A stretch of DNA of 64,000 bases, taken from IMG/VR virus record IMGVR_UViG_3300027541_000009, positions 186,001-250,000 of that record; one strand, given 5' to 3'. Made by a program: the position numbers and the translations under genes. Numbering within the stretch: position 1 is the first letter of the stretch; each line of letters opens with the position of its first letter. The notes under the pieces are model-generated. The model was given only the letters and a program-made list of their open reading frames with translations. It ran no database searches and was not told where the DNA came from. This document shows, in pieces, positions 27,306 through 53,822 of this stretch.

Positions 27306-27306
27306 A

Positions 27307-34799: not shown

Positions 34800-35651
34800 A
34801 TGAACAAAACTTTTCTTAAATGGGCTGGCAATAAAACAAGAGTTCTGCCCCATCTTATTCCCCATATTGGTTATCCAAAGCGTTATTGTGAACCCTTTGG
34901 TGGTAGTCTTGCTGTTGCTTTGAATACACCAGCACAGCAATATATCCTCAACGATGTGAATAAGGATTTGGTAGCAATCTATCAGAATTTGGTAAATCCA
35001 AATGATGATAGTTTCATTCAATACTGCGAAGAACTATTCACGCCAGAGAATAATACAAGAGAAGTATATTTGGAGTTGCGAGAGCACTTCAATCAAGCAA
35101 CAGATACTACAGAGAGAGCAAGGTTATTCATTTATTTGAATAAGCACTGTTTTAATGGACTATCAAGATATAATAGCAAAGGAATGTTTAATGTTCCTTA
35201 TGGTAGAGAAGTTGTAAATAAGGATACTGGGGAGAAAGAAATACAAAGTGCTTACTTTCCCAGAGAGGAAATGATGAACTTCAGGATGTATTTCTTATCC
35301 AAACAATTGGTGAGGTTCACATCACTTTCTTTTGAAGATTCATCTCTGTATGAGGATTTGGAAGCAGGTGATGTTGTCTACTTTGACCCACCGTATGTTC
35401 CTGCATCAAATACTGCAAATTTCACAAGTTATGCGACTGATGGATTTACTTCTGACCAACAAGTTCAGTTAGCACAACTTGCAGAATCTCTTTCATCTAA
35501 AGGTATCAAAGTGATTGTATCAAATCACGATGTTCCTATTACAAGAGAACTCTACAAAAATGCTACAATCTATCAAATTCAAGTAACTAGAACGATTGCT
35601 GCAAAAGGCGGCAGTAGGAAAAAAGCAAGTGAACTCATAGCAGTTTACTAA
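34800..35651 (+). CDS. dam: DNA adenine methyltransferase (Dam/D12 class)
   Basis: LKWAGNK, YCEPFGGS, LNDVN, YLNKHCFNGL.RYN..G.FNVPYG, VVYFDPPY, SNHD motifs. Confidence 0.93.
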   Translation: MNKTFLKWAGNKTRVLPHLIPHIGYPKRYCEPFGGSLAVALNTPAQQYILNDVNKDLVAIYQNLVNPNDDSFIQYCEELFTPENNTREVYLELREHFNQATDTTERARLFIYLNKHCFNGLSRYNSKGMFNVPYGREVVNKDTGEKEIQSAYFPREEMMNFRMYFLSKQLVRFTSLSFEDSSLYEDLEAGDVVYFDPPYVPASNTANFTSYATDGFTSDQQVQLAQLAESLSSKGIKVIVSNHDVPITRELYKNATIYQIQVTRTIAAKGGSRKKASELIAVY

Positions 35652-35697
35652 CTTGGATCCTCTAAAGTGTACCTATAATGTAAGCAACAAACTTGAA

Positions 35698-36111
35698 ATG
35701 TCCACCCGAGCACGAATCGGTCTTGAACTTAAGAATGGTTCTATTCTCTCTGTGTATCACCACTGGGATGGTTATCCTGAATGGTTGGGTCGTATCCTGA
35801 ACACTCATTACAACACTCGTCAGAAAGTTGCTGACTTGATTGATGGTGGTGATATGTCTTGCTGCTGGACTGATGACCGCTGGAATGATAGTGCAGTGAA
35901 GGGTGTTTATGGACCCAACTATTATTCTTATCGTAACGATGATTGTCCTCCTCGTCTTGATGCTGATTTGTGTGAGTATCTTCTGCCTGCTAATGGTGAA
36001 GAGTATGCCTATGTCTTCCGCAACGGTGAATGGGTGTGCTACAATATGAATTGTTATGAACAAAAACTTCCTGAAGTGATTGAAATCCCCTCTGCTGCGC
36101 TTGCTGTTTAA
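35698..36111 (+). CDS. Hypothetical protein (MSTRARIG..SVYHHWDGYP family)
   Basis: Widespread phage family motif YxHWDGYP...EEYAY; follows repeat copy 1. Confidence 0.8.
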   Translation: MSTRARIGLELKNGSILSVYHHWDGYPEWLGRILNTHYNTRQKVADLIDGGDMSCCWTDDRWNDSAVKGVYGPNYYSYRNDDCPPRLDADLCEYLLPANGEEYAYVFRNGEWVCYNMNCYEQKLPEVIEIPSAALAV

Positions 36112-36128
36112 TTCTTAGGTAAATTATT

Positions 36129-36536
36129 ATGAAACAACAAAACGGATTTATTGACCCTGCTGTTGCTGCTATTGCTGTCGGTGTGGTTGTGATTGGTGGT
36201 CTCATCTTTATTGGTGGTCCACAATATAATGTGTGGCAGCAATCTCTTGCTGGTAAAGCAGAGTTGCAAAAAGCAGAATACACTCGTCAGGTAGCAGTTC
36301 TTGAAGCACAAGCAAAGAAAGATAGTGCTCAACAACTTGCTGATGCTGAAATCATCCGTGCTACTGGTGTTGCTAAGGCAAACCAAATCATTGGTGATAG
36401 TCTGAAGGACAACCGTGAGTATCTTCAGTATCTTTACATTACTGGTCTTGAAGAAGGATCTAACAAAGGTAATGTGACCATCTATGTTCCCACCGAAGGT
36501 GGTATGCCTGTTCCTACTCTTCAAATGAGCAAATGA
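36129..36536 (+). CDS. Membrane-anchored SPFH/HflK-like coiled-coil protein
   Basis: TM helix, then AEIIRA.GVAKANQIIGDSL...YLQYL..YVPTE.GMP. Confidence 0.7.
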   Translation: MKQQNGFIDPAVAAIAVGVVVIGGLIFIGGPQYNVWQQSLAGKAELQKAEYTRQVAVLEAQAKKDSAQQLADAEIIRATGVAKANQIIGDSLKDNREYLQYLYITGLEEGSNKGNVTIYVPTEGGMPVPTLQMSK

Positions 36537-37019
36537 ACAAAAAGTACATTGTTGTTGGATTGATTGGTTTTGCAGTTATTCTTGGTTGGAATGTCTTTCT
36601 AATCCAGCGTGATGACAAAATGTATGATGCTTACTATCGCTCTAAGGCAATAGAGAATCTCAAGAAACCACCCTCTATAGAAATCAGATGAGTATTGTAC
36701 TCGGTGTAGCAATCTACGCAGCACTGGTTGCATTTGTATCCTCCATTATGCTATATTACTTAAAGGTAATGTATTCACGCGAAGAAGCAAAACTTAAGGA
36801 GAAATCCAAATGATCCCCAAACGACTCCGTGACCTTATTAAACAAGCAGAAATGGACAAAGTAGCAGAAGAGTTCTGGAAAGAAGTTGAGCGTGAAGCAG
36901 CGAAACTTGAGGTAACTGTTGACTACTATCTCGCTGAGTTTTACTAATGACTTTTATTCTTGGTATGGGAATCGGTATTCTTTTGACTGTAGGAGTTTCT
37001 TTTATAGTTGCTTCCGACA

Positions 37020-37048
37020 TTGACAATAACGACAACTAATCTTAAACT
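37020..37048 (+). promoter_or_regulatory. sigma70-type promoter
   Basis: TTGACA-17 nt-TAAACT. Confidence 0.65.
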
Positions 37049-37071
37049 TAAGAGGTAATTTACAAAGACAA

Positions 37072-37314
37072 ATGGCACAAAAGTTTCTTTACATCGTTGA
37101 CCACTACATTCCTTTTCCGTCCAGTGAATACGGTGGACTTTGGAATGTGATTGCGGAAAACGACAATGAATGTTTTGATTTGATTTCTGCAGAAGATTCT
37201 GACAATTTTTATGAGCAACACTATACTACTCTTCGTGAAAATGTGTTAAGCGCGAGGACTTATGCGCTTGCTGAGGATGTAGAATCTGCAGTAGTTGAAT
37301 CTTTTACAACCTGA
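37072..37314 (+). CDS. Hypothetical protein (VDH.IPFPSSEYGG)
   Basis: 80 aa after promoter. Confidence 0.7.
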   Translation: MAQKFLYIVDHYIPFPSSEYGGLWNVIAENDNECFDLISAEDSDNFYEQHYTTLRENVLSARTYALAEDVESAVVESFTT

Positions 37315-37470
37315 TGACTCACCACGTTACTCACACCAATAAAATGGTGTTTGATTTGAAGAAACAGTACCAAGAACGTATTGAACAACTGCAAAGTAAA
37401 ATTGCAGAACAAGAACACGAAATCTCACAACTGCAGAAACAAATTGAGTATATGTCGCGTGACAAGTTCT

Positions 37471-37752
37471 ATGATTGCTGAGTTTCCGCATAAAGCACCC
37501 GAAAATTATTATTATGAGTTCGAAGAGTTCAAGCGTGGAGTTATTGCTATATGGTTGTATTGCAATCGTAAGTTTGATTACAATAATGGTGCTCCCACAA
37601 GGACAATCTGGGGATTCTACAAATCCAAGACCAGAGAATACTTTGCCCCAATCAATAGTAAGACAGTTGGTGCTCGTGTAAATATCAACGACACGCGAAA
37701 CTATTCAGCAATGCCTATCAAGCAGTCTCCATTGGATGCGTTCTTTGTATGA
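37471..37752 (+). CDS. Hypothetical protein
   Basis: ATGA-coupled start 37471. Confidence 0.7.
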   Translation: MIAEFPHKAPENYYYEFEEFKRGVIAIWLYCNRKFDYNNGAPTRTIWGFYKSKTREYFAPINSKTVGARVNINDTRNYSAMPIKQSPLDAFFV

Positions 37753-38012
37753 CATACAAACCACAAGTCAATGATTATGTTGAATGGACAAAAGGTGTTG
37801 AAGGTTGGGTTTATTTTAGGGATGACGAATATGTTACGATTGAGTATGTTGTTCGTCCTAAAGACCAAGTAAACTATCACGCCTGCCCCATTCACGCAAA
37901 TGAAAGATTGCTTGTTGTTTGTTATAAAGAAGATTGGAAACATTTAAAGTATGTTAAATCAAGAAAATCAAGATATGAAGAAGAACAGAACTGTCTGGCG
38001 ATTGCTTGCTAA
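37749..38012 (+). CDS. Hypothetical protein
   Basis: ATGA-coupled. Confidence 0.65.
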   Translation: MTYKPQVNDYVEWTKGVEGWVYFRDDEYVTIEYVVRPKDQVNYHACPIHANERLLVVCYKEDWKHLKYVKSRKSRYEEEQNCLAIAC

Positions 38013-38241
38013 GGCACTTGGAGAAAAAGCAAGTAAATGTGATAAAGAAGCGGATAAGGTAGCACTTATCCGCCTTTTGATGTTTTTGAGCATTTTTATT
38101 ACCAACTGCTTCATTATCGCTAATGCAATTCGACATTGGAATGATGAGACTAAGATAGAAGTATTTGTTGAAACTTCTAGTATGCCAGAATATCAAACTC
38201 CACCTATGAGAGTTGCAAATAAACCCCTTGAGTTTGAGTAA
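37975..38241 (+). CDS. Hypothetical membrane protein (WR..AKALGEK..IRHW)
   Basis: TM segment. Confidence 0.65.
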   Translation: MKKNRTVWRLLAKALGEKASKCDKEADKVALIRLLMFLSIFITNCFIIANAIRHWNDETKIEVFVETSSMPEYQTPPMRVANKPLEFE

Positions 38242-38270
38242 CAATAAATAACTAAAAAGTTATTCATAAG

Positions 38271-38915
38271 ATGGACGCTCAAGACATTCGCAATCTTCAA
38301 GAAGCATATATGGAAGTTGTTGAAAACCAGCAACTTGATGAGATGCCATATCAAGTAATGGGTTCTCCTGATGGAAAGAAAGAGAAGAAGATTGGTAAAC
38401 CAGTAAAGAGTAGAAAGTATGCTGACGCAAGAGCAGCAGAACTTGAAGATACTCATAAAAAAACAGGTGGCAAATATCGTTCACAATATGTTGAGGATTA
38501 TGACCTATACGACATCATTCTTTCGCACCTTCTTGATGAAGGATATGCTGATACTGAACAAGCAGCAACGGCAATTATGGGGAATATGAGTGAAGAGTGG
38601 AGAGAGAGTATTATGATTGCTGAAGGAATGACTATGAAGGACTTCAAGGCAAATCGTCAGAAGAATAAGAGGAGATCTGCTTCTGCTGATGCTGAGAAGA
38701 GAGGTCATGTAGGTAAGGAATGGTATAACAGTGGTAGAAGATATTCTCCAGATGAAGCAAAGAGAAGTCGTGCAAATATGGATGATGAAGAAAGACGCAC
38801 GAGACATCGTAGTGCTGTAGATCCTGATAATGAGGATGATAATAACTACTCTGCAGATAAGACGAAGAATCCTAAGAAACTTCGTAAGCAAAAAGCAATG
38901 GGAGAATTAGGATAA
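38271..38915 (+). CDS. Late, highly charged protein; candidate internal head protein
   Basis: ATAAATA promoter at about 38244; LQEAY and LDE prohead-protease-like sites. Confidence 0.65.
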   Translation: MDAQDIRNLQEAYMEVVENQQLDEMPYQVMGSPDGKKEKKIGKPVKSRKYADARAAELEDTHKKTGGKYRSQYVEDYDLYDIILSHLLDEGYADTEQAATAIMGNMSEEWRESIMIAEGMTMKDFKANRQKNKRRSASADAEKRGHVGKEWYNSGRRYSPDEAKRSRANMDDEERRTRHRSAVDPDNEDDNNYSADKTKNPKKLRKQKAMGELG

Positions 38916-38916
38916 A

Positions 38917-39165
38917 ATGCTAACATTTAGAGAGTTCTACGAAATCTGCGAAGCAAAAAGACCAGACACTCCACCTCAAGCAGTTCCTGGAACTTACAAG
39001 AGGAGTGATACTGGTGTGCAAACTTATACTCTTCAAAGATATGAAGGTCCAGAAGGGAAACCAACAAAGAAAGAAGTTAATAAGTTAATTGTAAAGCGTA
39101 GTGGCGGAAAAGAAGTAACAAAGAGACTGAAAAAGTTAGCAAAATCTGTTAAAAAAATTGATTGA
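38917..39165 (+). CDS. Candidate internal head protein
   Basis: MLTFREFYEICEA N-terminus resembling T4 capsid-targeting sequence; basic body. Confidence 0.6.
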   Translation: MLTFREFYEICEAKRPDTPPQAVPGTYKRSDTGVQTYTLQRYEGPEGKPTKKEVNKLIVKRSGGKEVTKRLKKLAKSVKKID

Positions 39166-39205
39166 TTTTTACTTGGATCCTCTAAAGTGTACCTATAATG
39201 TAAGC

Positions 39206-39352
39206 ATGAAACAAATTATGGACTGCTTCGATGACATTCAAATTGAAGAATCTAATGGATTTGATTTTATTGAAAAAGATCTAACTGAACTCATTGAAGA
39301 ATCTAACGACTTCAATCTTAATGAGTATCTTAACTCCAACTATGATTACTGA
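39206..39352 (+). CDS. Small acidic hypothetical protein
   Basis: Follows repeat copy 2. Confidence 0.55.
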   Translation: MKQIMDCFDDIQIEESNGFDFIEKDLTELIEESNDFNLNEYLNSNYDY

Positions 39353-39412
39353 CAGTTTCTAAACTGTCCACCAAATCACCCACACAGAACACTTTTCCTT
39401 TATTATTCTCAA

Positions 39413-39613
39413 ATGACTGAACACATCCCCAACGTGCTCCCTCACATTCAAGAACTGAAAGATGCTTGGCGTCGTCAAGATTTTATCTTTACTAAGCAGC
39501 AACAAGAAGAATATGATTTGCTTCTTGCTACTCGCCGCGAACGTGTAAAGCAATTCTATACTGAAGGACGAGTATTCAAGGGTTCATATAAAGCAAAGGA
39601 AGTAGAGTTCTAA
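39413..39613 (+). CDS. Hypothetical protein
   Basis: ATG just after class-2 -10. Confidence 0.7.
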   Translation: MTEHIPNVLPHIQELKDAWRRQDFIFTKQQQEEYDLLLATRRERVKQFYTEGRVFKGSYKAKEVEF

Positions 39614-39640
39614 ATACTAAAAAGTAGTGTTTAGATAACA

Positions 39641-40249
39641 ATGAAAACCTTTCAGGAGTTTATGTCTATTTGCGAAGAAGTTGATGACAAGTCAAAAGCA
39701 CTTGGATTCCAAGCAACAATCAGAAAAGCAAGACCTGGCGGTCGTATTGGTGCTGAACGCAAAAAGACAACTCCTGAAAAACGCCGTATGAAAGCAGTTG
39801 GCGGTGGTAAAATGGAACCAGCAAAAGAATACAAACCACGCAAGGATATTGGAAAACCAAAGGGTTCACAAATTCAACAACCAGAACAAGAGCGTGGATC
39901 TGCTAGAGAAAGACAACTGGCAGCAGCAAAAGAGGAAAGAAGAAAAGCAGCACAGGCAAGAATTGCTGCTAAGAAAGGTGGAGAATCACCAGCACCAGCA
40001 GCAGAAAAACCAAAAGCAAAAGAAGTAGTAAAAGCAGCAACTAAACTTCTTTCTAAGAAGAAAGCAACAGCAGAACCCGCTCCTGGATACAAACCACAAA
40101 AAGCATCTGGTCTAAGCAGACAAGAAAGATTGCATGTTACAAGAAAGGGAGAACAGAAACTCCGCGATCTTGTAATTGCAGGAGAAAGAGAAAGAGGTAA
40201 AAACATTAAGAGTGAGAAAGACCTCCAACACCGATACACTTCTCGCTGA
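39641..40249 (+). CDS. Candidate internal head protein (K/R/A-rich)
   Basis: CTAAATA late promoter at 39610; MKTFQEFMSICEE similar to T4 capsid-targeting MKTYQEFIAE. Confidence 0.7.
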   Translation: MKTFQEFMSICEEVDDKSKALGFQATIRKARPGGRIGAERKKTTPEKRRMKAVGGGKMEPAKEYKPRKDIGKPKGSQIQQPEQERGSARERQLAAAKEERRKAAQARIAAKKGGESPAPAAEKPKAKEVVKAATKLLSKKKATAEPAPGYKPQKASGLSRQERLHVTRKGEQKLRDLVIAGERERGKNIKSEKDLQHRYTSR

Positions 40250-40308
40250 TACTTACTTGGATCCTCTAAAGTGTCCCTATAGTATAAGCACTCAAACGAA
40301 ACAACATT

Positions 40309-40464
40309 ATGCTCTGGCAAGACCGCAACGGTAACTGGTTCAGCACTGTTTCTCCTATCGACATGAAAATTGAGCGAGCAATGATTGAAGCAAACGCTAA
40401 CAAAGTCTGGGAAGAAAAAGAGCGTTCTGGTGATTGGTTGTTTGATGAAATGTTTGGCGGTTGA
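40309..40464 (+). CDS. Hypothetical protein (51 aa)
   Basis: Read manually, between repeat copy 3 and a class-2 promoter. Confidence 0.6.
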   Translation: MLWQDRNGNWFSTVSPIDMKIERAMIEANANKVWEEKERSGDWLFDEMFGG

Positions 40465-40554
40465 TTAACTGTCCGCCAGCACCCTTTCCAAGCGTCAGGA
40501 AGGGTGCTATAATGTCTTTTAGATACCAAACCACCTGAAACTCTGTAATTCGTA

Positions 40555-41742
40555 ATGATTCCTCATCTGATCAATCTTCGTCCTCACCAAGAACGCGGAG
40601 TTGCTGCTATGCAACAGCATGATAAAGGTCAAGTCATTGTTCCTACTGGTGGTGGCAAGACTCTGAAGATGATCTATGATTGTCTGCGTGAGTTGCAGTC
40701 ACAAACTCCCCAGACCATTGTTGTTGTTGCTCCGCGTATTCTTCTGGCAGAGCAACTGTCTTCGGAGTTCCTGGAGTTTATCACTAACGCTGCTGTTTTC
40801 CATGTTCACAGTGGCGAAACTCATCACGAGTCTTCTACTCGCCCTCAAGAGATTCGCAACTGGGTTGATGCTAATGCCGACAATCATCGCCTGATTGTAA
40901 CCACCTACAACTCTCTGTCGCGTCTTCAAGTGGCAGAAGTTGATGTGGATACCATTTACTTTGACGAGGCACATAATTCTGTTCAGCGTCACTTTTTCCC
41001 TGCAACTGAGCACTTTGCTGCTAATGCACGCCGCTGCTACTTCTTCACTGCTACCAGGAAGACTTCGCTCACTCCTTCTAAACCTGGAATGAACGATCGT
41101 GATGTCTATGGAGATATTATTTGCCGCGTTTCTGCTCCTGAACTTGTTGATGGAGGATACATTATTGCTCCTAAGATTGTAGCGAAGAAGTTTGATGTAC
41201 TTGCACCAAAGCAGGTAACTGCTGAATGTGACAGTAGCAATCTGATGGACACTCTGGAGGATATTGATTGCAAGAAAATCCTGGTATGTGTTAAGTCTGC
41301 GAAGCAACTTATCAACCTGATGTCTCATACTGACTGTGCTTCCCAACTAAATCAGCGTGGTTATTCTTACCTCTACATCACCTCAAAAACTGGAGCGATT
41401 ATTGATGGTAAGAAAGTCAATCGTGAAGTATTCTTTGACACGCTCAATTCTTGGGGTCGTGACCCTAACAAGAAGTTTGTTTGCTTCCATCGCTCTATTT
41501 TGAGCGAAGGAATTAATGTCAGCGAACTAGAGGCGGTCGTCTTTCTTCGCAATATGGATGTGATTGAAATGACCCAAACTATTGGTCGGGTTCTTCGCCT
41601 TGGCGGCAAAGAAAAGGTCTTCGGTCTCTGTGTGGTGCCTGTATATTCCAAAGTTGGAGTATCTACAGAGCGAGCACTCCAGCGAGTTGTTGATGCTGTG
41701 TTTGAGAAGGGTGAGATGGTTGATAGTGTAGTGCGGCGGTGA
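40555..41742 (+). CDS. Superfamily 2 (DEAH; ResIII-like) helicase
   Basis: LRPHQ, PTGGGKT, VVAPRILL.EQ, FDEAH, FTAT, LSEGIN, QTIGRVLR. Confidence 0.9.
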   Translation: MIPHLINLRPHQERGVAAMQQHDKGQVIVPTGGGKTLKMIYDCLRELQSQTPQTIVVVAPRILLAEQLSSEFLEFITNAAVFHVHSGETHHESSTRPQEIRNWVDANADNHRLIVTTYNSLSRLQVAEVDVDTIYFDEAHNSVQRHFFPATEHFAANARRCYFFTATRKTSLTPSKPGMNDRDVYGDIICRVSAPELVDGGYIIAPKIVAKKFDVLAPKQVTAECDSSNLMDTLEDIDCKKILVCVKSAKQLINLMSHTDCASQLNQRGYSYLYITSKTGAIIDGKKVNREVFFDTLNSWGRDPNKKFVCFHRSILSEGINVSELEAVVFLRNMDVIEMTQTIGRVLRLGGKEKVFGLCVVPVYSKVGVSTERALQRVVDAVFEKGEMVDSVVRR

Positions 41743-41855
41743 GTCTCGCCTAAGAACCCAGTCACAGTCAGGGGTCAAAACCTGATTTTTCTTCAATTCT
41801 ACTGCAGCGGTGTCATAGGTCATCCACTGCAACCAAATTCCTGATTTTTACTAAA
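41743..41855. repeat. Copy 1 of duplicated ~110-bp intergenic element
   Basis: 38-bp identical core (41786-41823) with 47971-48008, similar flanks. Confidence 0.85.
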
Positions 41856-41869
41856 GTATAGATTTTACC

Positions 41870-43607: not shown

Positions 43608-43654
43608 ACTTGGATCCTCTAAAGTGTACCTATAGTGTAAGACGCATTTACCCT

Positions 43655-44169: not shown

Positions 44170-44207
44170 TTGATTGAAACTTGGATCCTCGAAAGTGTAC
44201 CTATAGT

Positions 44208-45125
44208 ATGAGTAAGCAACCAATGCAAAATAAGCACCTTGAGCACCCTGAAGATGAAATCCTGACGGGTAATCTATCTGTTCTTGATTGGTTCTCTGAG
44301 GTTGATAGTTTTATCAGCGTCAAGATGGATGGTGCTCCTGCTATTGTTTGGGGCACTAATCCTGAGAATGGTAAGTTTTTTGTCTGCACCAAAGCAGCAT
44401 TTAACAAGCAAAAGATTCGCCTTTGCTATAACGAAGATGACATCTTTACTCATTTTGGTGGACAACCAAGGGTAGCACAAATCCTCATCTTCTGTCTGGA
44501 TTATCTTCCTCGCACTAACAATGTGTATCAGGGAGATTGGATTGGTTTCGGTAAAGGGTTGGATACATTCACGCCCAACACGATTACCTATCGTTTTCCT
44601 GAAGTTGTGCGTCAAGAGATTATCGTTGCTCCACATACTTACTACACTGGTGAGCGTCTGCCTGAAATGGTAGCACATCCTATCACTAGCAAGTTTGCAA
44701 GCACAAAGAAATGTTTGTTTGTGCAACCTGCTGTGTCGCTGAATCCTTATCGTGAAGATTTGGAGGATGTGTGTAACTTTGCTAAACAAATGAGCACTCT
44801 GTGTGAGTTTGTGAGCGACAAGAAAGCATCACAAATCAAAAAAGAGATTAACGCTTGCATCCGAGAGCAACGCACCATCCGTGAGGATGAAATTGCAGAA
44901 AAATGCGATTGTGACATCAACCTCATCAGATTGTGGAAGTTGGTGAAGTCTATCAAGGATGATTTGTTCCTGTTCATTCATGAAGAGGATGACATTGAAT
45001 GTTTCCTCTGGGATGTTGCAGGTTTCCACGAGGGTTATGTCATTCATAACAAGTTTGGGTCTTACAAAGTAGTTGATCGTGAGGTATTCTCTCATGCCAA
45101 CTTCACAATCGCAAAGAGTTGGTAA
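44208..45125 (+). CDS. KxDG-motif (ligase/nucleotidyltransferase-like) phage protein
   Basis: N.HLEHPED, SVKMDGAPAIVWG, YQGD, EGYV, YKVVDR..FS..NF; resembles covalent nucleotidyltransferase motifs I, IV and V. Confidence 0.6.
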   Translation: MSKQPMQNKHLEHPEDEILTGNLSVLDWFSEVDSFISVKMDGAPAIVWGTNPENGKFFVCTKAAFNKQKIRLCYNEDDIFTHFGGQPRVAQILIFCLDYLPRTNNVYQGDWIGFGKGLDTFTPNTITYRFPEVVRQEIIVAPHTYYTGERLPEMVAHPITSKFASTKKCLFVQPAVSLNPYREDLEDVCNFAKQMSTLCEFVSDKKASQIKKEINACIREQRTIREDEIAEKCDCDINLIRLWKLVKSIKDDLFLFIHEEDDIECFLWDVAGFHEGYVIHNKFGSYKVVDREVFSHANFTIAKSW

Positions 45126-45153
45126 CTTGGATCCTCGAAAGTGTACCTATAGT

Positions 45154-45585
45154 ATGAGCACTCCTACGATGCAAGCACAAGCACAACAAACTATTGCAGA
45201 GAATGTGTATAAGAACACTCTGCTGCTGATTGAAGCACTGAAAGACAACTATCGTCAGTATTCTATTCGCGGTCACCAAAAGTTCGTGAATGATGCTGAT
45301 AATCAAGAGTATCATCAGCGCAAGATTGATGAACTCAAGTCTGGCAAGTGTGACATTGATTATACTGTTGAGACTGGCAAAAAGTATCACAAAGTCATTC
45401 TGGTGAATGGTGGTGGATCGAGATCGGTTCACTGTTTTATCGACAAGCAAAATGGAGGCGTTTTCAAGTCAGCGTCGTGGCGTAGTCCTGCAAAGGGTGA
45501 GCGATACAATCTCTTGTTAATTAAGGACCGTGAATGGTTGTTTGAGAACGCAGATTGGTCGTCCGGATATCTTTACAAAAGGTGA
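45154..45585 (+). CDS. Hypothetical protein (GKKY.K..SVHCFID..G.V.K.ASW..PAK family)
   Basis: ATG supplied by repeat copy 6. Confidence 0.75.
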   Translation: MSTPTMQAQAQQTIAENVYKNTLLLIEALKDNYRQYSIRGHQKFVNDADNQEYHQRKIDELKSGKCDIDYTVETGKKYHKVILVNGGGSRSVHCFIDKQNGGVFKSASWRSPAKGERYNLLLIKDREWLFENADWSSGYLYKR

Positions 45586-46839: not shown

Positions 46840-46877
46840 GTGATTCTTACTTGGATCCTCTAAAGTGTACCTATAGT

Positions 46878-47120
46878 ATGAGCACAACCACTGAAATGGA
46901 TCAAGTCTTTCACTATGTCACCAACTGGAAAGAAGGTAAGGTGATGCAAATGTTCATTCAACAAATCACCCCTGAGTATCAAGAATGTGACCACAAATAT
47001 GTTGCTATTGCTCTCAATCCTGTAACTAACAAGAGCATGGTAATGTCTAATCCTCGCAGTCATTATGATACTCTCCAGTGGGTTCGTAAGTTCTGTGGTT
47101 CTTTCTCTCTTCTGTACTGA
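46878..47120 (+). CDS. Hypothetical protein
   Basis: ATG supplied by repeat copy 7. Confidence 0.65.
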   Translation: MSTTTEMDQVFHYVTNWKEGKVMQMFIQQITPEYQECDHKYVAIALNPVTNKSMVMSNPRSHYDTLQWVRKFCGSFSLLY

Positions 47121-47292
47121 TTATGAACAACTATCGACTCTTGATTGAGTATAAAGTCCCCAACAGTGCAGAGACTTACTATGAAGAAAGGTTCATCAAG
47201 TCTCGTTCATCTTGTGGTAAAATCGCTGATGATTACCTAGCACAAGACCGCACAAATCTTATCCGCTCTGTTGAAGTTACCCCTGTTTAATT

Positions 47293-47562
47293 ATGTACCG
47301 CACTCTTTCTGAACTTCGTGACTCTATCAACCAAATGATTGAGAGTCAAGGTGAGAACGCTCCCTGTGCTGCGTTTGTATTCACTCAACACGATGTCGTT
47401 GAGTTTGATGGTGAGGACAATCAAGAGAAGTATTTTTCTTCTCTTTTCACTCAAGATGTGCTCGCTGATGTAGGCGGTTCCGACTACATTTACGAACAGA
47501 TTGGTGAGGTGATTGATGATTCAATCCGTGACCGTAAGCAAATGTCCATCTACGCTAACTGA
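47293..47562 (+). CDS. Hypothetical protein
   Basis: 89 aa. Confidence 0.7.
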   Translation: MYRTLSELRDSINQMIESQGENAPCAAFVFTQHDVVEFDGEDNQEKYFSSLFTQDVLADVGGSDYIYEQIGEVIDDSIRDRKQMSIYAN

Positions 47563-47722
47563 TTATGACTAACAAAACACAACTTTTTGAGTTTCTGTAT
47601 GAAACTTGCAAAAAGAATAATGGTGTCTTAGAAGATACTTTGCGTAACTACATTGACTCCTTAGATGAGGTGGAACTTTGCGAACTTGAGGATTTTCTTG
47701 TCAACAACTTTGGAGATGATTG

Positions 47723-47917
47723 ATGACTGACGGTTACACTTTCAATCGCGTTAATTTTACTCCTAATGAGGAAAGTTGTATTCTTAAGTTTCTCAATCAA
47801 GCACGAGAATGTGGGTATCCTAGTGCAAACGAAGAATGGTATCCTGTGATCGATTCTATCTTCCAAAAATTCTTTAACTCTAACTTGAAAGAGGCACAAG
47901 AGTGGCAAACCCTGTGA
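47723..47917 (+). CDS. Hypothetical protein
   Basis: TGATG-coupled. Confidence 0.6.
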   Translation: MTDGYTFNRVNFTPNEESCILKFLNQARECGYPSANEEWYPVIDSIFQKFFNSNLKEAQEWQTL

Positions 47918-47928
47918 TTCTCACTTGT

Positions 47929-48041
47929 GTCTCACTGAGAACCCAGTCCACCACTGAAGCAAAAACCTGTTTTTTCTTCAATTCTACTGCAGCGGTGTCA
48001 TAGGTCATTCACTGCAGGGAAATCCTCAATTTTTTCTAAAA
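47929..48041. repeat. Copy 2 of duplicated ~110-bp intergenic element
   Basis: See copy 1 at 41743. Confidence 0.85.
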
Positions 48042-48054
48042 TACAAACAAACAC

Positions 48055-48198
48055 ATGAAGTACATCGTTGAACTCTACGTTGGTGGCAAAGTCTTCAAAG
48101 AAGAAGTGCAAGCAACCAACCCAAAAGATGCCCGTGAGACTGCACTGGCACGAAATCCTCACGCAAAAGTTGTTGCGGTCAATGTAAGTTTTCGTTGA
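48055..48198 (+). CDS. Hypothetical protein (MKYIVELYVGGKVF..A.NP.A family)
   Basis: 47 aa, read manually; its TGA lies in the left extension of repeat copy 8. Confidence 0.65.
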   Translation: MKYIVELYVGGKVFKEEVQATNPKDARETALARNPHAKVVAVNVSFR

Positions 48199-48232
48199 TT
48201 CTAACTTGGATCCTCTAAAGTGTACCTATAGT

Positions 48233-48403
48233 ATGAGCAACACTTTCACCGTCCGTTTCGTATCCGATGCTCTGGATTCTCCCGAGTATATTGGACCTTT
48301 CTACACTGAAGATGACGCCCAAGACTATTGCGATGCCCGCAACGGTTCGCTATCACTTTCTGGGATTCCTTCCTGGGTTGCCTGTTACTCTGTCGTTGAC
48401 TGA
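48233..48403 (+). CDS. Hypothetical protein (YIGPF motif)
   Basis: Only in-frame ATG is at the repeat's right edge. Confidence 0.6.
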   Translation: MSNTFTVRFVSDALDSPEYIGPFYTEDDAQDYCDARNGSLSLSGIPSWVACYSVVD

Positions 48404-49034: not shown

Positions 49035-49085
49035 TAGCAACTTGGATCCTCTAAAGTGTACCTATAGTATCACCGCAATTCCACA

Positions 49086-49676
49086 ATGTCCAAACTTACC
49101 ACTTTGCAGGTATCTGCCAAACTGAATGTAACTGATTTCAGTGCATTTGATAAACCTGGCAAGAACAAAGGTGCTCGCGGGCAACTGTTAGAAATTGTCC
49201 TTGGAGTTCCTAACTCTTCTGACCTCAAAGATTTGGAGGATGGAGAGATTAAGACTTTTACAGTTGGTGAATCTATTGCTGCCACACAGTTGAAGCATTG
49301 TCTATCTGAAATCATTGAAGATTCTGTGTCTTTTGATGATAGTAAGGTTGGACAGAAACTGAAGCAAACTGTATATGTTGGATTCACCCGTGAGAACGAT
49401 TATGTAGGTTCTGTTGTACTGAATGAGGAAACTCATCCCGAACACTATCAGGAACTGCGTGAGGATTATGAGTTCATTTGTGAGCAGATTCGCCGTGCAT
49501 TTGATATTGAAAGCGAACTGAATACAATCACTGGACCTAACGGATTGCTGCAGATTCGCACCAAAGCATCTAAAACTAACGGTCGCTATGTTCCTCTCCG
49601 TTTCGCAGGTGTGACGCTTAAGGATAAAGGAATGGCATTTTATTTGTGTGGTTCATTCGGTCGCAATCTTTTCTGA
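49086..49676 (+). CDS. MutH/Sau3AI-like PD-(D/E)xK endonuclease
   Basis: NKG..GQLLE..LG...S....D...GEIKT N-terminus and LQIRTKAS...AFYL C-terminus typical of the MutH/Sau3AI fold. Confidence 0.75.
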   Translation: MSKLTTLQVSAKLNVTDFSAFDKPGKNKGARGQLLEIVLGVPNSSDLKDLEDGEIKTFTVGESIAATQLKHCLSEIIEDSVSFDDSKVGQKLKQTVYVGFTRENDYVGSVVLNEETHPEHYQELREDYEFICEQIRRAFDIESELNTITGPNGLLQIRTKASKTNGRYVPLRFAGVTLKDKGMAFYLCGSFGRNLF

Positions 49677-49710
49677 TAGCAACTTGGATCCTCTAAAGTG
49701 TACCTATAGT

Positions 49711-49893
49711 ATGACTAACACCTCTTTCGACTTCCAAACCGACATCACTCCTGCACTTCTGGAGTTCATGTGCAACAATCACACAGATTTGAATGATTGT
49801 GTAGATTTCGTTTGCAATGTCTTTGACCTTGATGCAACTGACGAACTGATTGATTATGTTGCTGATGAGTTCGACGCTTTCTTCGGCAACTGA
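49711..49893 (+). CDS. Hypothetical acidic protein
   Basis: ATG at repeat copy 10. Confidence 0.6.
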   Translation: MTNTSFDFQTDITPALLEFMCNNHTDLNDCVDFVCNVFDLDATDELIDYVADEFDAFFGN

Positions 49894-50107: not shown

Positions 50108-50152
50108 TTCGTAAGAGTCACTAACTTGGATCCTCTAAAGTGTACCTATAGT

Positions 50153-50383
50153 ATGAGCACTTACACTTCACCTCTCACCTCTAAAGTCTACGAAATCGTC
50201 AAGACTTCACACACACGAAACGCATGGGATTCTGAAGGCAATTTGACTCCTTATGTGCAATCTGTCTTTGACATCTATCACGAAGGCAAAAAAGTTCAGT
50301 TTGCATTAACTGCTGAAGGTGTTGCTGAGAGTGTAGCACATCTTGAGAATCCTGGTCGTGATGTATCTTCCCGCTTTGACTGA
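50153..50383 (+). CDS. Hypothetical protein
   Basis: Only in-frame ATG is at repeat copy 11. Confidence 0.65.
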   Translation: MSTYTSPLTSKVYEIVKTSHTRNAWDSEGNLTPYVQSVFDIYHEGKKVQFALTAEGVAESVAHLENPGRDVSSRFD

Positions 50384-50676
50384 ATGAGACGACAGAAAGT
50401 GAAAACAATTCTGTTAATCTTTATCGTTGCGAGTATCCTATCACCAGGAGTTCGTAACATCACTGCCACCACATTACACACTGTTGCTGACATTATTGCA
50501 CCCCATGATTGAGACTGATTTCTACATTCTTTCCGAAGAACAATTTGCACAATTCTCACAACTTGCAGAGGAAATCAATGTGAGTATTGATTATTATTTG
50601 TGTGAGTTTTGTGATGTATCTGGACCTTTGATTGAAGTGTGATACTAACTTGGATCCTCTAAAGTGTACCTATAGT

Positions 50677-50880
50677 ATGAGCACTTCCCAAATGTCCCAA
50701 ATGTCTAAAGTCTACGCTGTGATTGGCGGTTTGGATTATGAAGGTGAAGACTTCAAATCTCTCCGCTTGTTTGATTGCTTCTCCGCTGCAGATGCTTACC
50801 TGAAGCATCTGGAAGCAAACTACGATTATGCTCTACTGGAAACCCGTGAGGTGAATGTAGAGTCTGCAATCGTTGCTTGA
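50677..50880 (+). CDS. Hypothetical protein (G.DYEGE)
   Basis: Single gene between repeat copies 12 and 13. Confidence 0.65.
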   Translation: MSTSQMSQMSKVYAVIGGLDYEGEDFKSLRLFDCFSAADAYLKHLEANYDYALLETREVNVESAIVA

Positions 50881-50933
50881 TTGCAACTTGGATCCTCTAA
50901 AGTGTACCTATAGTATAACCACAACTTCCAACC

Positions 50934-51251
50934 ATGCGAAAGATTGAACTCCAAATGAATAAAGCAATCATTGATTGCAAAGACTGGAAAAATGACAACA
51001 CTGAAGTTCTCTATTCGCCCGAAAGAGATGCCTCTTATGTGTATCTTCACGGCAATCATATTGCAACGATTGGTGATACCTTCCTTGAACTTTACACCTG
51101 TGGTTATAGAACTGTAACCACCAAATCACGTCTCAATGCTATTCTGAAAGTTCATGGAAATGATGCTCGTATCTTTCAACGTGACTTTGAATGGTTTGTG
51201 ATTGATAACGGCAACAAAGTTCCTTTCACTGAAGGTATGGTGCTTAACTGA
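50934..51251 (+). CDS. Hypothetical protein (MRKIE..LHGN.IA..TTKSRLNA family)
   Basis: Widespread phage family motif. Confidence 0.8.
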   Translation: MRKIELQMNKAIIDCKDWKNDNTEVLYSPERDASYVYLHGNHIATIGDTFLELYTCGYRTVTTKSRLNAILKVHGNDARIFQRDFEWFVIDNGNKVPFTEGMVLN

Positions 51252-51410
51252 TGACTAACGAACAAAAGATTGAGGCATTACCCACAATCCGTACCTTCCC
51301 ATATACGATTGGTCTCCGTACATACTTCTCGGAAGAAGAATATCAAAAAGCACTCCACGATTTCCTGACTTGGAGAAACCACCAACAGAGTAAAAGGAAC
51401 CGCACTAATG

Positions 51411-51713
51411 ATGACTAACGAACAAAAGATTGAGGCACTGACTAATCTTCTGGACAACGTGATTCACTCTCTGAGTATGAAACAATACGAGATTGAAGAT
51501 GCAACTGAATCTCATAAGTGTGAAGTAGAAGCAGACAACTATTACCAAAAGATGCTCACTCTAACTGAATCAAACAAAATGTTCACGATTCGCTACTTTA
51601 CACCGTATCAACAACAGTGGAGAACGCAAACATTCTCTACACTAGATGAAGCAAATCGTATGATTGAGTTCTACAAATCATGCGGAAGTCCTGCTGAACT
51701 CATTAACAACTAA
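51411..51713 (+). CDS. Hypothetical protein (possible two-module fusion)
   Basis: MTNEQKIEAL start duplicated at 51251. Confidence 0.6.
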   Translation: MTNEQKIEALTNLLDNVIHSLSMKQYEIEDATESHKCEVEADNYYQKMLTLTESNKMFTIRYFTPYQQQWRTQTFSTLDEANRMIEFYKSCGSPAELINN

Positions 51714-51720
51714 TCTTCCA

Positions 51721-51957
51721 ATGTTACTCTCCAAACAGTCATTCAACAATCAACAAGTTCTCCCTTTCATAGTAAAGAAAGAGGATGAATATACTGAAGA
51801 AGGTAGTTACTCACTTCACCTATTCTCCCGAATCGTTATCACCAAGGAAGGAAAGAAATACCGATACTTACCTTTACGATTTGAAGGAGAAGAAGCACGA
51901 TTCCGCAAACGTAGTGATGCAGAGGATTATGCAAGGTACAGATTAGCACTTGATTGA
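51721..51957 (+). CDS. Hypothetical protein
   Basis: ATG 51721; followed by terminator. Confidence 0.6.
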   Translation: MLLSKQSFNNQQVLPFIVKKEDEYTEEGSYSLHLFSRIVITKEGKKYRYLPLRFEGEEARFRKRSDAEDYARYRLALD

Positions 51958-51968
51958 TGATACACAGT

Positions 51969-51993
51969 GACCCCACATCAGGGGTCTTTTTTT
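51969..51993 (+). terminator. Rho-independent terminator
   Basis: GACCCC-ACATCA-GGGGTC-T7 between convergent genes. Confidence 0.75.
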
Positions 51994-53005
51994 ATGCTTT
52001 TTCGTACCATCTATAACCATAAGCATTGCACCAAGTTTGCCCATTGTTTATACGTTGAATGTTGTTTTTGATATTAGCAACGCCACTATAATTACCATCA
52101 CCTTTGATAAAGAATGACGCCTCACTCATACTACCAAATTCTACGATTTCGTTGGTTTTAATACTTACACCATAGACAGGTTTCTTTCTTTTTTCGTTGC
52201 TAATTGCAGCAATTTTTTTATAGTGTTCTATTGAATTTGTTTTTGTTGCTGGTGTCCAATCTGTTGGTTTTGATCTAAAGAAATACCAACCTTTTACCTG
52301 TAATTTGCTATTGTCGGGACTGTTAAGTGAGTGATGAATAGCGTGATTATTTGTACGATTTCCTTGTATTTCTTCTGCCGCATCTGCCATTGATTTCCAC
52401 ATCTTTTTACGCCCTAATGTTGGATTGATTCCATATACAGCACCACGAACATTTACTCTCTTTTCTATTACTTTAGGTGTTTCACCTTTCCAAGCCCATC
52501 TATATCCAAGTGCTTGAAATGTCACACCTTTAATGCAAGCAATTATCCCAGTTTTTCCCTTTTTATTTCCACAACTATCAGCAGCAATTCCTACACTCTC
52601 ATAGTCTCTAACCCATTCACCTTCTAATGTATAACAACTCACTGCTTTGGAATGTGGATGATTTGCCCAATACTTTTTTGGTTTCTTTACACCATCACCA
52701 CCTAATGTAATGTTATATCCATTCTTACCACAAGTATCAAGTTTGTTTATCCAAAAGGTTTCACGTTCATTAACATTATCATCGCTACATTCTTCCAATA
52801 CTCTAAACTTAAAGTTATCTGCTCCGTACTTACATATGGCACGAACAATAGGCATAGAGTGAGATGAATTGTTCTCTGCTAAATTATCCTTACTTCTTGC
52901 GTTCTGTAGGTGTTGCTTCCATCTATCATATGGGTTGGGTTGTGTAGTCTTTCCCACATAGAGTTTGCTATTCTCAAGGTTGGTGATTGAGTAGATGTAT
53001 GCCAC
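51992..53005 (-). CDS. GIY-YIG homing endonuclease with NUMOD1-like repeats
   Basis: YIYSITN..N.KLYVGKT..RW.QH..KYG.DNF..LE..RE..WI..GYN; repeated F/Y.S...AA...I...GY.W modules; minus-strand TATAAATA at 53032-53039. Confidence 0.9.
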   Translation of the reverse strand: MAYIYSITNLENSKLYVGKTTQPNPYDRWKQHLQNARSKDNLAENNSSHSMPIVRAICKYGADNFKFRVLEECSDDNVNERETFWINKLDTCGKNGYNITLGGDGVKKPKKYWANHPHSKAVSCYTLEGEWVRDYESVGIAADSCGNKKGKTGIIACIKGVTFQALGYRWAWKGETPKVIEKRVNVRGAVYGINPTLGRKKMWKSMADAAEEIQGNRTNNHAIHHSLNSPDNSKLQVKGWYFFRSKPTDWTPATKTNSIEHYKKIAAISNEKRKKPVYGVSIKTNEIVEFGSMSEASFFIKGDGNYSGVANIKNNIQRINNGQTWCNAYGYRWYEKA

Positions 53006-53065
53006 TGAATTGATGAAAAATGTACTTGCGTTATTTATATTTAAGTGCTGAAATAATGATATTAG

Positions 53066-53129
53066 TTTTCCACAATGTTGTGGAAAAAGTATAATAAATG
53101 TGTGGAAAAACTGTTAGAATTGTGGAAAA
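53066..53129. promoter_or_regulatory. Cluster of four DnaA-box-like 9-mers (TTTTCCACA)
   Basis: TTTTCCACA at 53066 (+) and TGTGGAAAA at 53079, 53101, 53121. Confidence 0.7.
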
Positions 53130-53174
53130 CTTATAGTCATTTAAATGTCTCTGGGGGTCGTTATCTTACAGGTC

Positions 53175-53204
53175 ATTCTATCACACTCGCCCCCAAAATG
53201 TCAA
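53175..53204 (-). promoter_or_regulatory. sigma70-type promoter pointing toward the DnaA boxes
   Basis: Minus strand TTGACA-18 nt-TAGAAT with extended TG. Confidence 0.6.
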
Positions 53205-53277
53205 TACCCCCGCGTTCTCAAATCCCCACAATCCCCCCGCATAAATCCACCGACCCCTGATAAATACCCCCAGACCA

Positions 53278-53306
53278 TTGACAAAAACCGCCCAGCATCT
53301 TATAGT
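53278..53306 (+). promoter_or_regulatory. sigma70-type promoter
   Basis: TTGACA-17 nt-TATAGT. Confidence 0.75.
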
Positions 53307-53333
53307 AGTTTCATAACACACAGGAGCGAACTT

Positions 53334-53507
53334 ATGTCAGTTGCATATCAGCAGGCACAGAAGCAGCGTTATAGGATTACTCTGGATCTATCAGTGTTCG
53401 GTGACTTCGACCCACACCAGATTGATTGGGAGAAGTTATTCAAGTTGGAACCTGCAGAGAAGTGTGATGCTTATGTTGAGGACCTAAGTACACCTGACCG
53501 ATGGTAA
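53334..53507 (+). CDS. Hypothetical protein
   Basis: AGGAG SD; start 53334 within track ORF 53145. Confidence 0.7.
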   Translation: MSVAYQQAQKQRYRITLDLSVFGDFDPHQIDWEKLFKLEPAEKCDAYVEDLSTPDRW

Positions 53508-53588
53508 TTTGGTATCAATTTATACCATATAAGGCGTTTTTATTTTGTTAACATAAAGCATAAATAATCGGGTCTTTATGTTAACAAA

Positions 53589-53768
53589 ATGAGAACACTA
53601 AAATATAAACATTTGGGCGACATGAGGATTATACGAGTCGCCCAAATAACCACTGATATTCTACCTCAACTGCAAGAGGTTATGCAACAGTTAGAGGAGA
53701 ACGGTGAGGATAGTCGTGAGGTGATATTGCGCGTCTTAAGTGATATCGAAGACCGTCTGGGTAACTGA
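53589..53768 (+). CDS. Hypothetical protein (59 aa)
   Basis: Read manually; start lies in a 17-bp hairpin arm; stop abuts repeat copy 14. Confidence 0.55.
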   Translation: MRTLKYKHLGDMRIIRVAQITTDILPQLQEVMQQLEENGEDSREVILRVLSDIEDRLGN

Positions 53769-53822
53769 AACTTGGATCCTCTAAAGTGTACCTATAGTGT
53801 AAGGACAACCACAAACCACTAA

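Follow-up and report, generated by a model that had tools for sequence, protein, structure and literature searches.

A repeat of 29 bp that recurs 14 times at gene junctions of a T4-like cyanophage is best read as the start signal of its early genes, whereby a 3' core shared by many related phages is joined to a 12-base 5' box that is uniform within each genome and that changes in step with one small, very basic and apparently virion-packaged phage protein, pointing to an injected, promoter-specific transcription factor. The repeats were studied in a window of 64,000 nucleotides (positions 186,001 to 250,000 of the IMG/VR record IMGVR_UViG_3300027541_000009), which belongs to a T4-like cyanomyovirus from riverine metagenomes. 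The original prediction had described an array of 14 co-oriented copies lying between 35651 and 53798, and this observation is borne out by our analysis; its interpretation, namely that the copies are sigma70 early promoters that double as recombination or homogenisation sites in an integron-like, integrase-free array of exchangeable gene cassettes, finds only partial support.

A search of the window allowing up to three mismatches recovered exactly 14 matches, all of them on the + strand, nine being exact and five carrying one change, whereas none of 100 shuffled sequences gave any match; the 12-nt 5' part alone also occurs exactly 14 times. Two full-length contigs of the same population (205 kb and 284 kb) contain 14 copies each, so the array holds all copies in the genome. 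The irregular start-to-start spacings (238-3520 bp) are as originally described, and conservation extends a further 7 nt beyond the 29-mer, as RTRAGCA. Nine of the 14 copies have TGAT-N4 upstream, and the upstream stop codon lies 0-9 nt before the repeat or overlaps its first A. An ATG follows directly in 7 of the 14 copies; across 173 distinct instances from relatives, 106 (61%) have that ATG, and 101 of those 106 open at least 40 codons in that frame, against 1 and 4 in the other two frames, while a second in-frame ATG usually lies 15-18 nt further on. The stop-element-start architecture that had been proposed holds across the clade, and the genes are small early-region genes of a T4-like phage. 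One correction concerns the spacing of the putative promoter hexamers, since TTGGAT lies 15 nt, and not 17 nt, from TATAGT; the 17-nt spacing holds only for the overlapping hexamer TA(G/A)T(A/G)T, the -10 hexamer originally named, and it is this hexamer that stays in register in all core variants.

Coordinates of the repeat copies and of the associated features within the window.
Feature	Position	Strand	Remarks
Element copy 1	35651..35686	+	29-mer plus GTAAGCA; follows the Dam-like methylase gene, whose stop TAA overlaps the first A; first ATG at +18
Element copy 2	39171..39206	+	Heads the unit that contains the candidate factor gene; the ATG at 39206 follows GTAAGC directly
Element copy 3	40255..40290	+	Core variant GTGTCCC, the form common in relatives; heads the helicase unit
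Element copy 4	43608..43643	+	
Element copy 5	44179..44214	+	GAAAG variant; the abutting ATG starts the DUF6267 gene, with a second in-frame ATG at +15
Element copy 6	45125..45160	+	GAAAG variant; the abutting ATG starts the DUF7717 gene
Element copy 7	46849..46884	+	Heads the unit 46878-48198, which is missing exactly element-to-element in the relative L076
Element copy 8	48204..48239	+	
Element copy 9	49040..49075	+	Heads the single gene 49086-49676
Element copy 10	49682..49717	+	
Element copy 11	50124..50159	+	
Element copy 12	50648..50683	+	Heads the single gene 50677-50880
Element copy 13	50886..50921	+	
Element copy 14	53770..53805	+	Last copy in the genome
Candidate specificity factor (family 7)	39641..40249	+	202 aa, pI 10.4; N-terminal T4-type capsid-targeting signature (MKTFQEFMSICE), conserved basic N-terminal two-thirds, dialect-specific C-terminal third
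Late-promoter-like motif CTAAATA	39610..39616	+	31 nt before the family-7 ATG; conserved in 30 of 31 distinct relatives; same layout as before gp25 and the fibre-like genes

Relatives carry the same element at orthologous junctions, even in phages whose genes are only 65-80% identical, and in 80 relatives it was found in 409 instances on the + strand against 5 on the - strand, that is, on the coding strand at gene starts. Its 3' core, consisting of TAAAGYGT, about 3 nt, the -10-like TA(G/A)T(A/G)T and a conserved RAGCA start region, is shared clade-wide, including with S-SM2 and SynMITS9220M01, in which the box differs. The box itself exists in about 10 types, or dialects, each uniform within a contig and swapped in situ between conserved flanks among close relatives. 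These observations do not support a sigma70 reading of the 5' half: TTGGAT matches TTGACA at 3 of 6 positions, no copy passes a permissive sigma70 scan, and relatives replace this box with unrelated sequences such as GGGGGGTCG or GTTACTCACC. Nor is RNA structure conserved in the element (z between -0.9 and +0.8). One contig, L030, carries two element types in blocks and, if that contig is real, one phage can use both types.

Of 44 gene families compared, only the family to which the gene at 39641-40249 belongs (hereafter family 7) tracks the box type, with z = 12.2 against 5.8 for the next highest family. On the family-7 tree the box type needs 13 changes (the minimum being 10), whereas on the anchor gene it needs 32, and related boxes pair with related C-termini. 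With the genomic background held constant, C-terminal identity is 0.80, 0.64, 0.31 and 0.29 for box differences of 0, 1-2, 3-5 and 6-10 nt, respectively, while helicase identity stays at 0.91, and the C-terminus carries more of the signal than the N-terminus. All 23 element-bearing loci with adequate coverage encode family 7, whereas Syn9, Bellamy and the relative L073, which use another element type, do not; moreover, when the box was predicted for 8 independently retrieved contigs, the prediction was correct at box-family level in 7. Caution should be taken, however, in that these statistics use related sequences and are not fully independent, and there is one real exception to the co-variation, in the relative L117.

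The N-terminus of the family-7 protein matches the capsid-targeting sequences of the T4 internal proteins IPI, IPII and IPIII (MKT(F/Y)xEF followed by (L/I)xE, the prohead-protease site), as judged by comparison with T4 MKTYQEFIAE and MKTFKEFTS, and the signature is conserved in relatives, although a gene-start error, corrected here, hides this targeting signal in public annotations. The late-promoter-like motif upstream suggests, on sequence grounds alone, late expression. In contrast, no DNA-binding domain was detected in the protein: it has no Pfam, PHROG or PDB match, and its structure model is poor (pLDDT 65, pTM 0.24).

Taken together, and with moderate confidence, we interpret the repeat as this phage's version of a two-part early-gene promoter used by a large group of T4-like cyanophages. 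In this view the 3' core is presumably read by host RNA polymerase, whereas the 5' 12-14 nt, which occupy the position where a -35 or a T4 MotA box would sit, form a genome-specific recognition box that would be read by the C-terminal helix region of the family-7 protein; the latter, packaged in the capsid and injected with the DNA, would then be present when early transcription begins. The layout resembles a MotA box and the delivery resembles that of Alt (PMC2988021). While the anatomy of the element, its conservation, the dialects, the co-variation and the indels described below are demonstrated by the sequences, promoter activity, the transcription start site, the packaging and injection of the protein and its binding to the box are inferred. 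The geometry also poses a problem, since under sigma70 geometry the start site would fall a few nt after RAGCA, downstream of the abutting ATG, and yet that ATG is kept in frame in the large majority of cases and three genes of the window have no second start, so that either read-through transcripts are translated or the start site lies elsewhere. Read-level data yielded only k-mer contigs that break at every copy, with RNA depth tracking DNA depth, and the apparent joints in these contigs are k-mer graph artefacts.

Because the elements are direct repeats, they also seem to recombine occasionally, deleting or inserting whole promoter-led units. Two pairs of contigs that are 98-99.7% identical differ by indels running exactly from one element to another; the junctions are hybrids and the crossovers lie in the box, within an 18-19-nt shared stretch, and look like short-homology events, although each short form rests on one contig and these cases come from relatives of the phage in the window. 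Two more identity tracts end in or at an element, and of the recent tract ends 13 of 26 lie within 30 nt of an element, against 8.0 expected at gene ends (P = 0.03). Over longer timescales, breakpoints are not enriched at elements: element junctions are broken no more often than other junctions (74% vs 66%, p = 0.30), and neighbour diversity does not differ (p = 0.67). Several recent breakpoints in this very phage lie elsewhere, at 47917, 41743/43461 and 51251/53178. An exclusive cassette role is therefore not supported; no recombinase domain was found in the ORFs scanned, the elements form no hairpin, and no integrase-like function was seen or is needed. The argument that identity across the spacer implies homogenisation is likewise not supported, as the supposed spacer TAAAGYGT is conserved across genera and is thus functional, while the box tracks a specific protein; selection by a trans-acting factor explains the identity among copies better than homogenisation does.

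Among the alternative explanations, the originally proposed model of ordinary host sigma70 promoters of the PeSL kind, kept near-identical by recombination or gene conversion, appears unlikely, even though the -10-like hexamer in all variants, the location in a hyperplastic early region, the element-to-element indels and tract ends, the terminator hairpin directly preceding the element in some relatives and the deletions and mini-circles documented for PeSLs in other T4-like phages (PMC2839356, PMC4122927) all speak in its favour; homogenisation alone does not predict that the box follows one protein, and the mismatched, replaceable -35, the lack of a Shine-Dalgarno sequence and of a stem-loop upstream of the copies in the window and the absence of long-term breakpoint enrichment count against it. 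Somewhat less likely still is that the box is read by a host factor or polymerase feature, and that family 7 is simply a fast-evolving injected anti-defence protein whose match to the box reflects shared descent of two hypervariable traits. T-even internal proteins are indeed highly diverse defence-countering proteins that share only the targeting sequence (PMC3012670), which could by itself explain the C-terminal diversity, and the lack of a detected DNA-binding fold and the exception in L117 also speak in favour of this view; however, other equally divergent families (1, 6, 23 and 29) show no association with box type (z between -0.5 and 2.7), the association persists at constant background, the presence and absence of the protein follow the element type, and host polymerase would, on general grounds, be too conserved among picocyanobacteria to explain about 10 unrelated boxes.

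An action mainly at the RNA level, as a processing site or translation initiation region on polycistronic early transcripts with the box recognised by a phage RNA-binding protein or nuclease, is quite improbable. The in-frame abutting ATG, the second ATG at +15 or +18, the absence of Shine-Dalgarno sequences and a basic protein that could bind RNA would be consistent with it, but no secondary structure is conserved, 39% of copies lack the ATG and have their first ATG at distances varying from 6 to 40 nt, and the -10-like hexamer and strict DNA-level register fit a promoter better. A promoter for a phage single-subunit RNA polymerase, suggested by the resemblance of the core to SP6- and T7-type promoters (...GTGTACCTATAG; by eye, 11 of 17 positions match the SP6 promoter), by the high copy identity and by the fixed position before genes, is close to refuted: no such polymerase is encoded by the large ORFs scanned or annotated in the syntenic regions of S-SM2, SynMITS9220M01, Bellamy or P-TIM68, and T4-like phages use host polymerase (PMC2988021).

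Comparison with described systems places the element near several of them. The promoter-early stem-loop (PeSL) elements of T4-type phages (Arbiol 2010, PMC2839356; Comeau 2014, PMC4122927) are likewise repeated, co-oriented, early-promoter-bearing junction elements between small genes in hyperplastic regions, with a 3' end that reaches the start codon, copies that can recombine to delete or insert the intervening DNA, and different versions in different phage groups. In the present case, however, none of the 17 terminator-like sites of the window lies next to a copy, a hairpin with a T-run being present only at some junctions in relatives; the start codon at the 3' end is present without a Shine-Dalgarno sequence, a genome-specific box that co-varies with a phage protein stands in place of a sigma70-like -35, and the copies are far more uniform than published PeSLs. 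The MotA/AsiA-dependent middle promoters of T4 (PMC2988021) combine, like the element as interpreted here, a host-type -10 with a phage-specific box in place of the -35, read in trans by a phage protein of about 200 aa, and the sequence geometry of our element fits a box centred near -30; nevertheless, no MotA or AsiA homologue was detected by Pfam among the 18 ORFs scanned (a scan that was not exhaustive for small ORFs), the elements head early-region genes, the candidate factor looks virion-delivered rather than early-expressed, and the box has many dialects rather than one consensus.

With the T4 internal head proteins the family-7 protein shares, besides the N-terminal signature, a small size, a basic character, a hypervariable body and a late-type upstream signal, and Alt sets the precedent of an injected head protein that boosts early promoters; yet the known internal proteins counter host defences, Alt is an enzyme without DNA sequence specificity, and no internal protein is known to recognise promoter sequences. 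Finally, a non-sigma70-like conserved element before the early genes of Syn9 and P-TIM40 has reportedly been found to be abundant in cyanophage genomes and metagenomes (Doron et al. 2016, ISME J). The Syn9 repeat found here has a related core, GTGTA-YYC-TATAAG, and the Syn9 and Bellamy repeat has another upstream part (GTGGCACA about 26 nt upstream) and an AAGG ribosome-site-like motif.

These findings bear on some of the most abundant viruses in the sea and in fresh water, since T4-like cyanophages appear to lack the T4 MotA/AsiA system and the present analysis supplies a concrete, testable candidate mechanism for how they launch early transcription from elements that do not resemble host promoters. 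It names a specific protein, present in cultured phages as SSM2_065 and SynMITS9220M01_053, it defines a DNA box for each phage and draws on natural swap experiments already performed by evolution, and it gives the first comparative evidence in cyanophages for promoter-repeat-mediated unit deletions of the PeSL type. More tentatively, and at somewhat less than even likelihood, the C-terminal helix of a capsid-packaged, sequence-specific promoter-recognition protein, delivered together with the DNA, and the -35-position box of all early promoters may co-evolve as a matched pair, creating about 10 or more promoter dialects that change rapidly between close relatives and that may act as transcriptional compatibility groups limiting or shaping gene exchange among co-infecting phages. 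If the proposed mechanism is correct, the protein would be the first injected sequence-specific transcription factor in this phage group, and its action would also explain why promoter copies are near-identical within a genome yet unrelated between sister phages.

The original prediction of a 29-bp repeat array was confirmed, in that the 29-mer occurs 14 times, always on the + strand and at the predicted positions, with nine exact copies and five copies carrying one change, whereas shuffled sequence yielded no match. The 12-nt 5' part alone likewise occurs exactly 14 times, and two full-length contigs of the same phage population (205 kb and 284 kb) hold 14 copies each; the array therefore contains every copy in the genome. 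Conservation runs 7 nt past the 29-mer, as RTRAGCA, the stop codon of the preceding gene lies 0-9 nt upstream or overlaps the first base, and seven copies are followed at once by ATG. The window encodes a T4 gp6-type baseplate wedge protein that is 72-74% identical to those of Synechococcus phages S-SM2 and Bellamy, together with fibre-like genes and two tRNAs; no cultured phage is close at the DNA level, although the same sequence is abundant in riverine metagenomes. The array itself occupies the early-type region of small genes between the fibre genes and the gp25/gp6 genes, an arrangement that is syntenic with S-SM2.

Positions in the window of the genes, repeats and points of divergence considered here
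Position	Strand	Feature	Observation
2722-2807 and 3120-3192		tRNA-Leu(TAA) and tRNA-Thr(TGT) genes	Syntenic with those of S-SM2
34208-47917		Tract 99.9% identical to relative contig L030	Identity ends at 47917
34800-35651		Dam-like (D12) methylase gene	Ends exactly at copy 1
38271-38915		214-aa gene of unknown function, inside the early array	ATAAATA late-promoter-like motif 27 nt before its ATG; may be another late or virion protein
39641-40249		Family 7, the protein linked to box type	pI 10.4
40555-41742		Helicase
41743-43461 (approximate)		Insertion of the restriction-modification genes relative to relative contig L012
41766-41787		Terminator-like hairpin	Start of the two-copy intergenic repeat
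41777-41858 and 47962-48043		Two-copy intergenic repeat, unrelated to the element	86.6% identical over 82 nt
41870-43425		Type II restriction-modification pair	MvaI/BcnI-family endonuclease plus an N6/N4 methylase
44208-45125		DUF6267
45154-45585		DUF7717
46878-48198		Unit whose counterpart is lacking in relative contig L076
47117		Departure of a contig variant, held by one DNA run, from the window upstream of this point	A gene boundary (47120/47123), not an element
51251-53178		Homing endonuclease region	Replaced by 0.65 kb in relative contig L021
51992-53005	-	GIY-YIG (SegE-like) homing endonuclease	The only clear minus-strand gene in the array

Comparison with relatives reveals that the element is clade-wide and composed of two parts. 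S-SM2 has at least 12 copies of a homologous element in the syntenic region and SynMITS9220M01 at least 11; in both, the 3' half matches that of the window (TAAAGYGT, three bases, TATAGT, then RTRAGCA) while the 5' half is entirely different, namely AAGGGGGGTCG in S-SM2 and ATGTTACTCACC in SynMITS9220M01. In 80 loci retrieved around homologues of the DUF6267 gene we found 409 core matches on the coding strand as opposed to 5 on the other strand, with about ten types of 5' box, each of them nearly uniform within a contig. Contigs with the window's own box but only 65-80% gene identity keep the element at orthologous junctions and carry small lineage-wide variants, and at one orthologous junction the same upstream gene end and the same downstream gene start flank at least six different boxes; the box is therefore replaced in situ. 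Some relatives have the core variant ...CCTAGTAGT, yet the hexamer that stays in register in all variants is TA(G/A)T(A/G)T, i.e. the one that the original prediction had taken as the -10. Syn9 and Bellamy use a different repeated element (GTGGCACA, about 26 nt, then CGTGTATTCTATAAGAGTCAAAGG) whose core is related to that of the window, and Prochlorococcus phage P-TIM68 (L110, positions 12000-30300) has a family-7 homologue and its own repeat of 11-15 copies (...ATGTTAGTTACCTCTAAATTGAC...), a further variant of the element. Literature searches for the published Syn9 early motif and start sites (Doron et al. 2016) did not turn up the motif.

The fit of the element to sigma70 is poor. No copy passes a permissive sigma70 scan, TTGGAT matches TTGACA at 3 of 6 positions and lies 15 nt from TATAGT, and no terminator-like hairpin sits next to any copy. 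Across 173 distinct instances ATG follows the core in 106, and of those ATGs 101 open at least 40 codons in that frame, against 1 and 4 in the other two frames; a second ATG lies at +15 (45 cases) or +18 (8 cases), 59 of 60 such ATGs being in frame, whereas copies without the first ATG have their first ATG mostly at +15 to +21. The three bases after the core co-vary strongly (ATG 106, GTA 42, ATA 17, GTG 2), although GTG would be common if the positions were independent. Assuming sigma70 geometry, the start site would fall just after RAGCA, in which case the first ATG would be used only on read-through transcripts and the second on the element's own transcript; this is inference, and since three window genes have no second start, the start site is not fixed by it. 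Metagenomic read data, which consisted of k-mer contigs only, break at every copy, their apparent joints having sides of 29-39 nt, which is the repeat length, and RNA depth tracks DNA depth, so that they were uninformative on start sites, deletions and circles and are not counted as evidence.

Other readings of the element were considered and set aside. That the boxes might be methylation targets was suggested by the presence of GATC and GGGCCC inside some of them, the window's box containing GATC within GGATCC, and by the Dam-like methylase gene next to copy 1; however, methyltransferase presence within 10 kb does not follow box type in relatives, even if methylation of the box is not thereby excluded. 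An RNA structure or a known RNA family finds no support either, as there is no significant fold and no Rfam hit apart from one chance-level match, and the idea of a promoter for a single-subunit polymerase was rejected because no such polymerase gene was found among the large ORFs scanned.

A more telling result emerged when we asked which gene family's sequence tracks box type. A single family (family 7) stands out, with z = 12.2 against 5.8 or less for the 43 other families. On its tree box type needs 13 changes (minimum 10, shuffled mean 26.9) whereas on the DUF6267 tree it needs 32 (minimum 11, shuffled mean 50.5), and related boxes pair with related proteins. The signal is comparatively stronger in the C-terminal third, the Mantel correlation being r = 0.52 for the C-terminus and 0.29 for the N-terminus, with 0 of 500 permutations reaching either value. 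When background relatedness was held constant by using only pairs whose helicases are at least 85% identical (mean 0.91), C-terminal identity fell from 0.80 to 0.64, 0.31 and 0.29 as the box differed by 0, 1-2, 3-5 and 6-10 nt, while N-terminal identity stayed at 0.61-0.69. All 23 element-bearing loci with adequate coverage encode the protein, whereas Syn9, Bellamy and the relative L073 do not; eight independently retrieved contigs agreed with the prediction at box-family level in 7 cases, although one genuine exception exists (the relative L117). The variable residues follow a conserved (S/T)xxER motif and lie in the only well-predicted helix of an otherwise low-confidence AlphaFold model (pLDDT 65, pTM 0.24), which is too poor for a structure-based identification, and a protein atlas gave only unnamed viral clusters. 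The family has at least 2,842 clusters in public data, all unnamed, and in cultured phages the protein is present as SSM2_065 (S-SM2) and SynMITS9220M01_053 (SynMITS9220M01).

Several features of this protein lead us to infer that it may be injected. It begins MKTFQEFMSICE, and T4 IPIII and IPII begin MKTYQEFIAE and IPI begins MKTFKEFTS, this being the capsid-targeting sequence shared by otherwise diverse T-even internal proteins (PMC3012670), and it is the only ORF in the window with this start. Public gene calls often start at Met8 (MSICE...), as in the proteins P0001, P0021, P0031, P0087 and others of the family, thereby cutting off the conserved MKTFQEF signature. A CTAAATA or ATAAATA motif lies 25-31 nt before its ATG in 30 of 31 distinct relatives and in all 8 independent contigs, even where the upstream gene differs, and the same late-promoter-like layout precedes gp25 and the fibre-like genes but not the helicase, methylase or DUF6267 genes. 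In T4 the internal head protein Alt is injected and boosts early promoters, and MotA reads a box at -30 that replaces the -35 (PMC2988021).

With regard to recombination, deep comparisons give no enrichment at elements: adjacency is broken in 74% of informative comparisons at 13 element junctions and in 66% at 43 other junctions (p = 0.30), and element-led genes do not have more diverse upstream neighbours than internal genes (p = 0.67). In this phage, recent differences lie away from elements, as is the case for the end of the identity with L030, the insertion of the restriction-modification genes relative to L012 and the replacement seen in L021. Among the relatives examined, the endonuclease of the restriction-modification pair is found only in this population, and it is absent at this site in L012. 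One copy of the second, unrelated repeat sits at the left edge of this insertion and the other exactly where the identity with L030 ends and where DNA and RNA contigs of the population break. Beyond that point L030 (contig IMGVR_UViG_3300024507_000369, positions 13700-20915) switches to a mosaic with five Syn9-type elements and second, diverged copies of several array genes, being either a real recombinant between phages using different element types or an assembly chimera.

Among near-identical contig pairs, however, 13 of 26 tract ends lie within 30 nt of an element, the expectation being 2.6 for random positions and 8.0 for gene ends (P = 0.03). Two of these events are exact element-to-element indels: the relative contig L048 lacks 3.8 kb (five units) that L050 and L047 have, and L076 lacks a single unit. 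The short forms are hybrids, with the first copy's flank and box followed by the second copy's core variant, and the longest exact stretch that the two parental copies share at the crossover is only 18-19 nt, which is shorter than assembler k-mers, so that a mis-join is unlikely; still, each short form is seen in one contig only, and a search for independent contigs carrying either junction found none beyond the original ones. Two further tracts end at an element's 3' edge (L058 vs L059) or inside the box, between a T2-box and a T3-box phage (L080/L082 vs L094).

Taken together, the original prediction was correct as an observation, and its interpretation is supported only in part: copies can recombine, as it proposed, but they are not the main breakpoints over time. 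The distribution of the element, its two parts, the co-variation and the hybrid junctions are what the sequences themselves show, whereas the promoter role, the start site, the delivery of the protein and its recognition of the box are inferred. Repeated early-promoter junction elements are already known from T4-type phages, and the present element is best seen as a variant of these whose new aspect is its two-part construction; it probably belongs to the class of non-sigma70 early elements reportedly found in Syn9. The link to a basic protein with a capsid-targeting signature is the result of greatest interest, and it lends itself to direct testing in cultured phages. The near-perfect identity of the copies is better explained by recognition by one trans-acting factor than by homogenisation.
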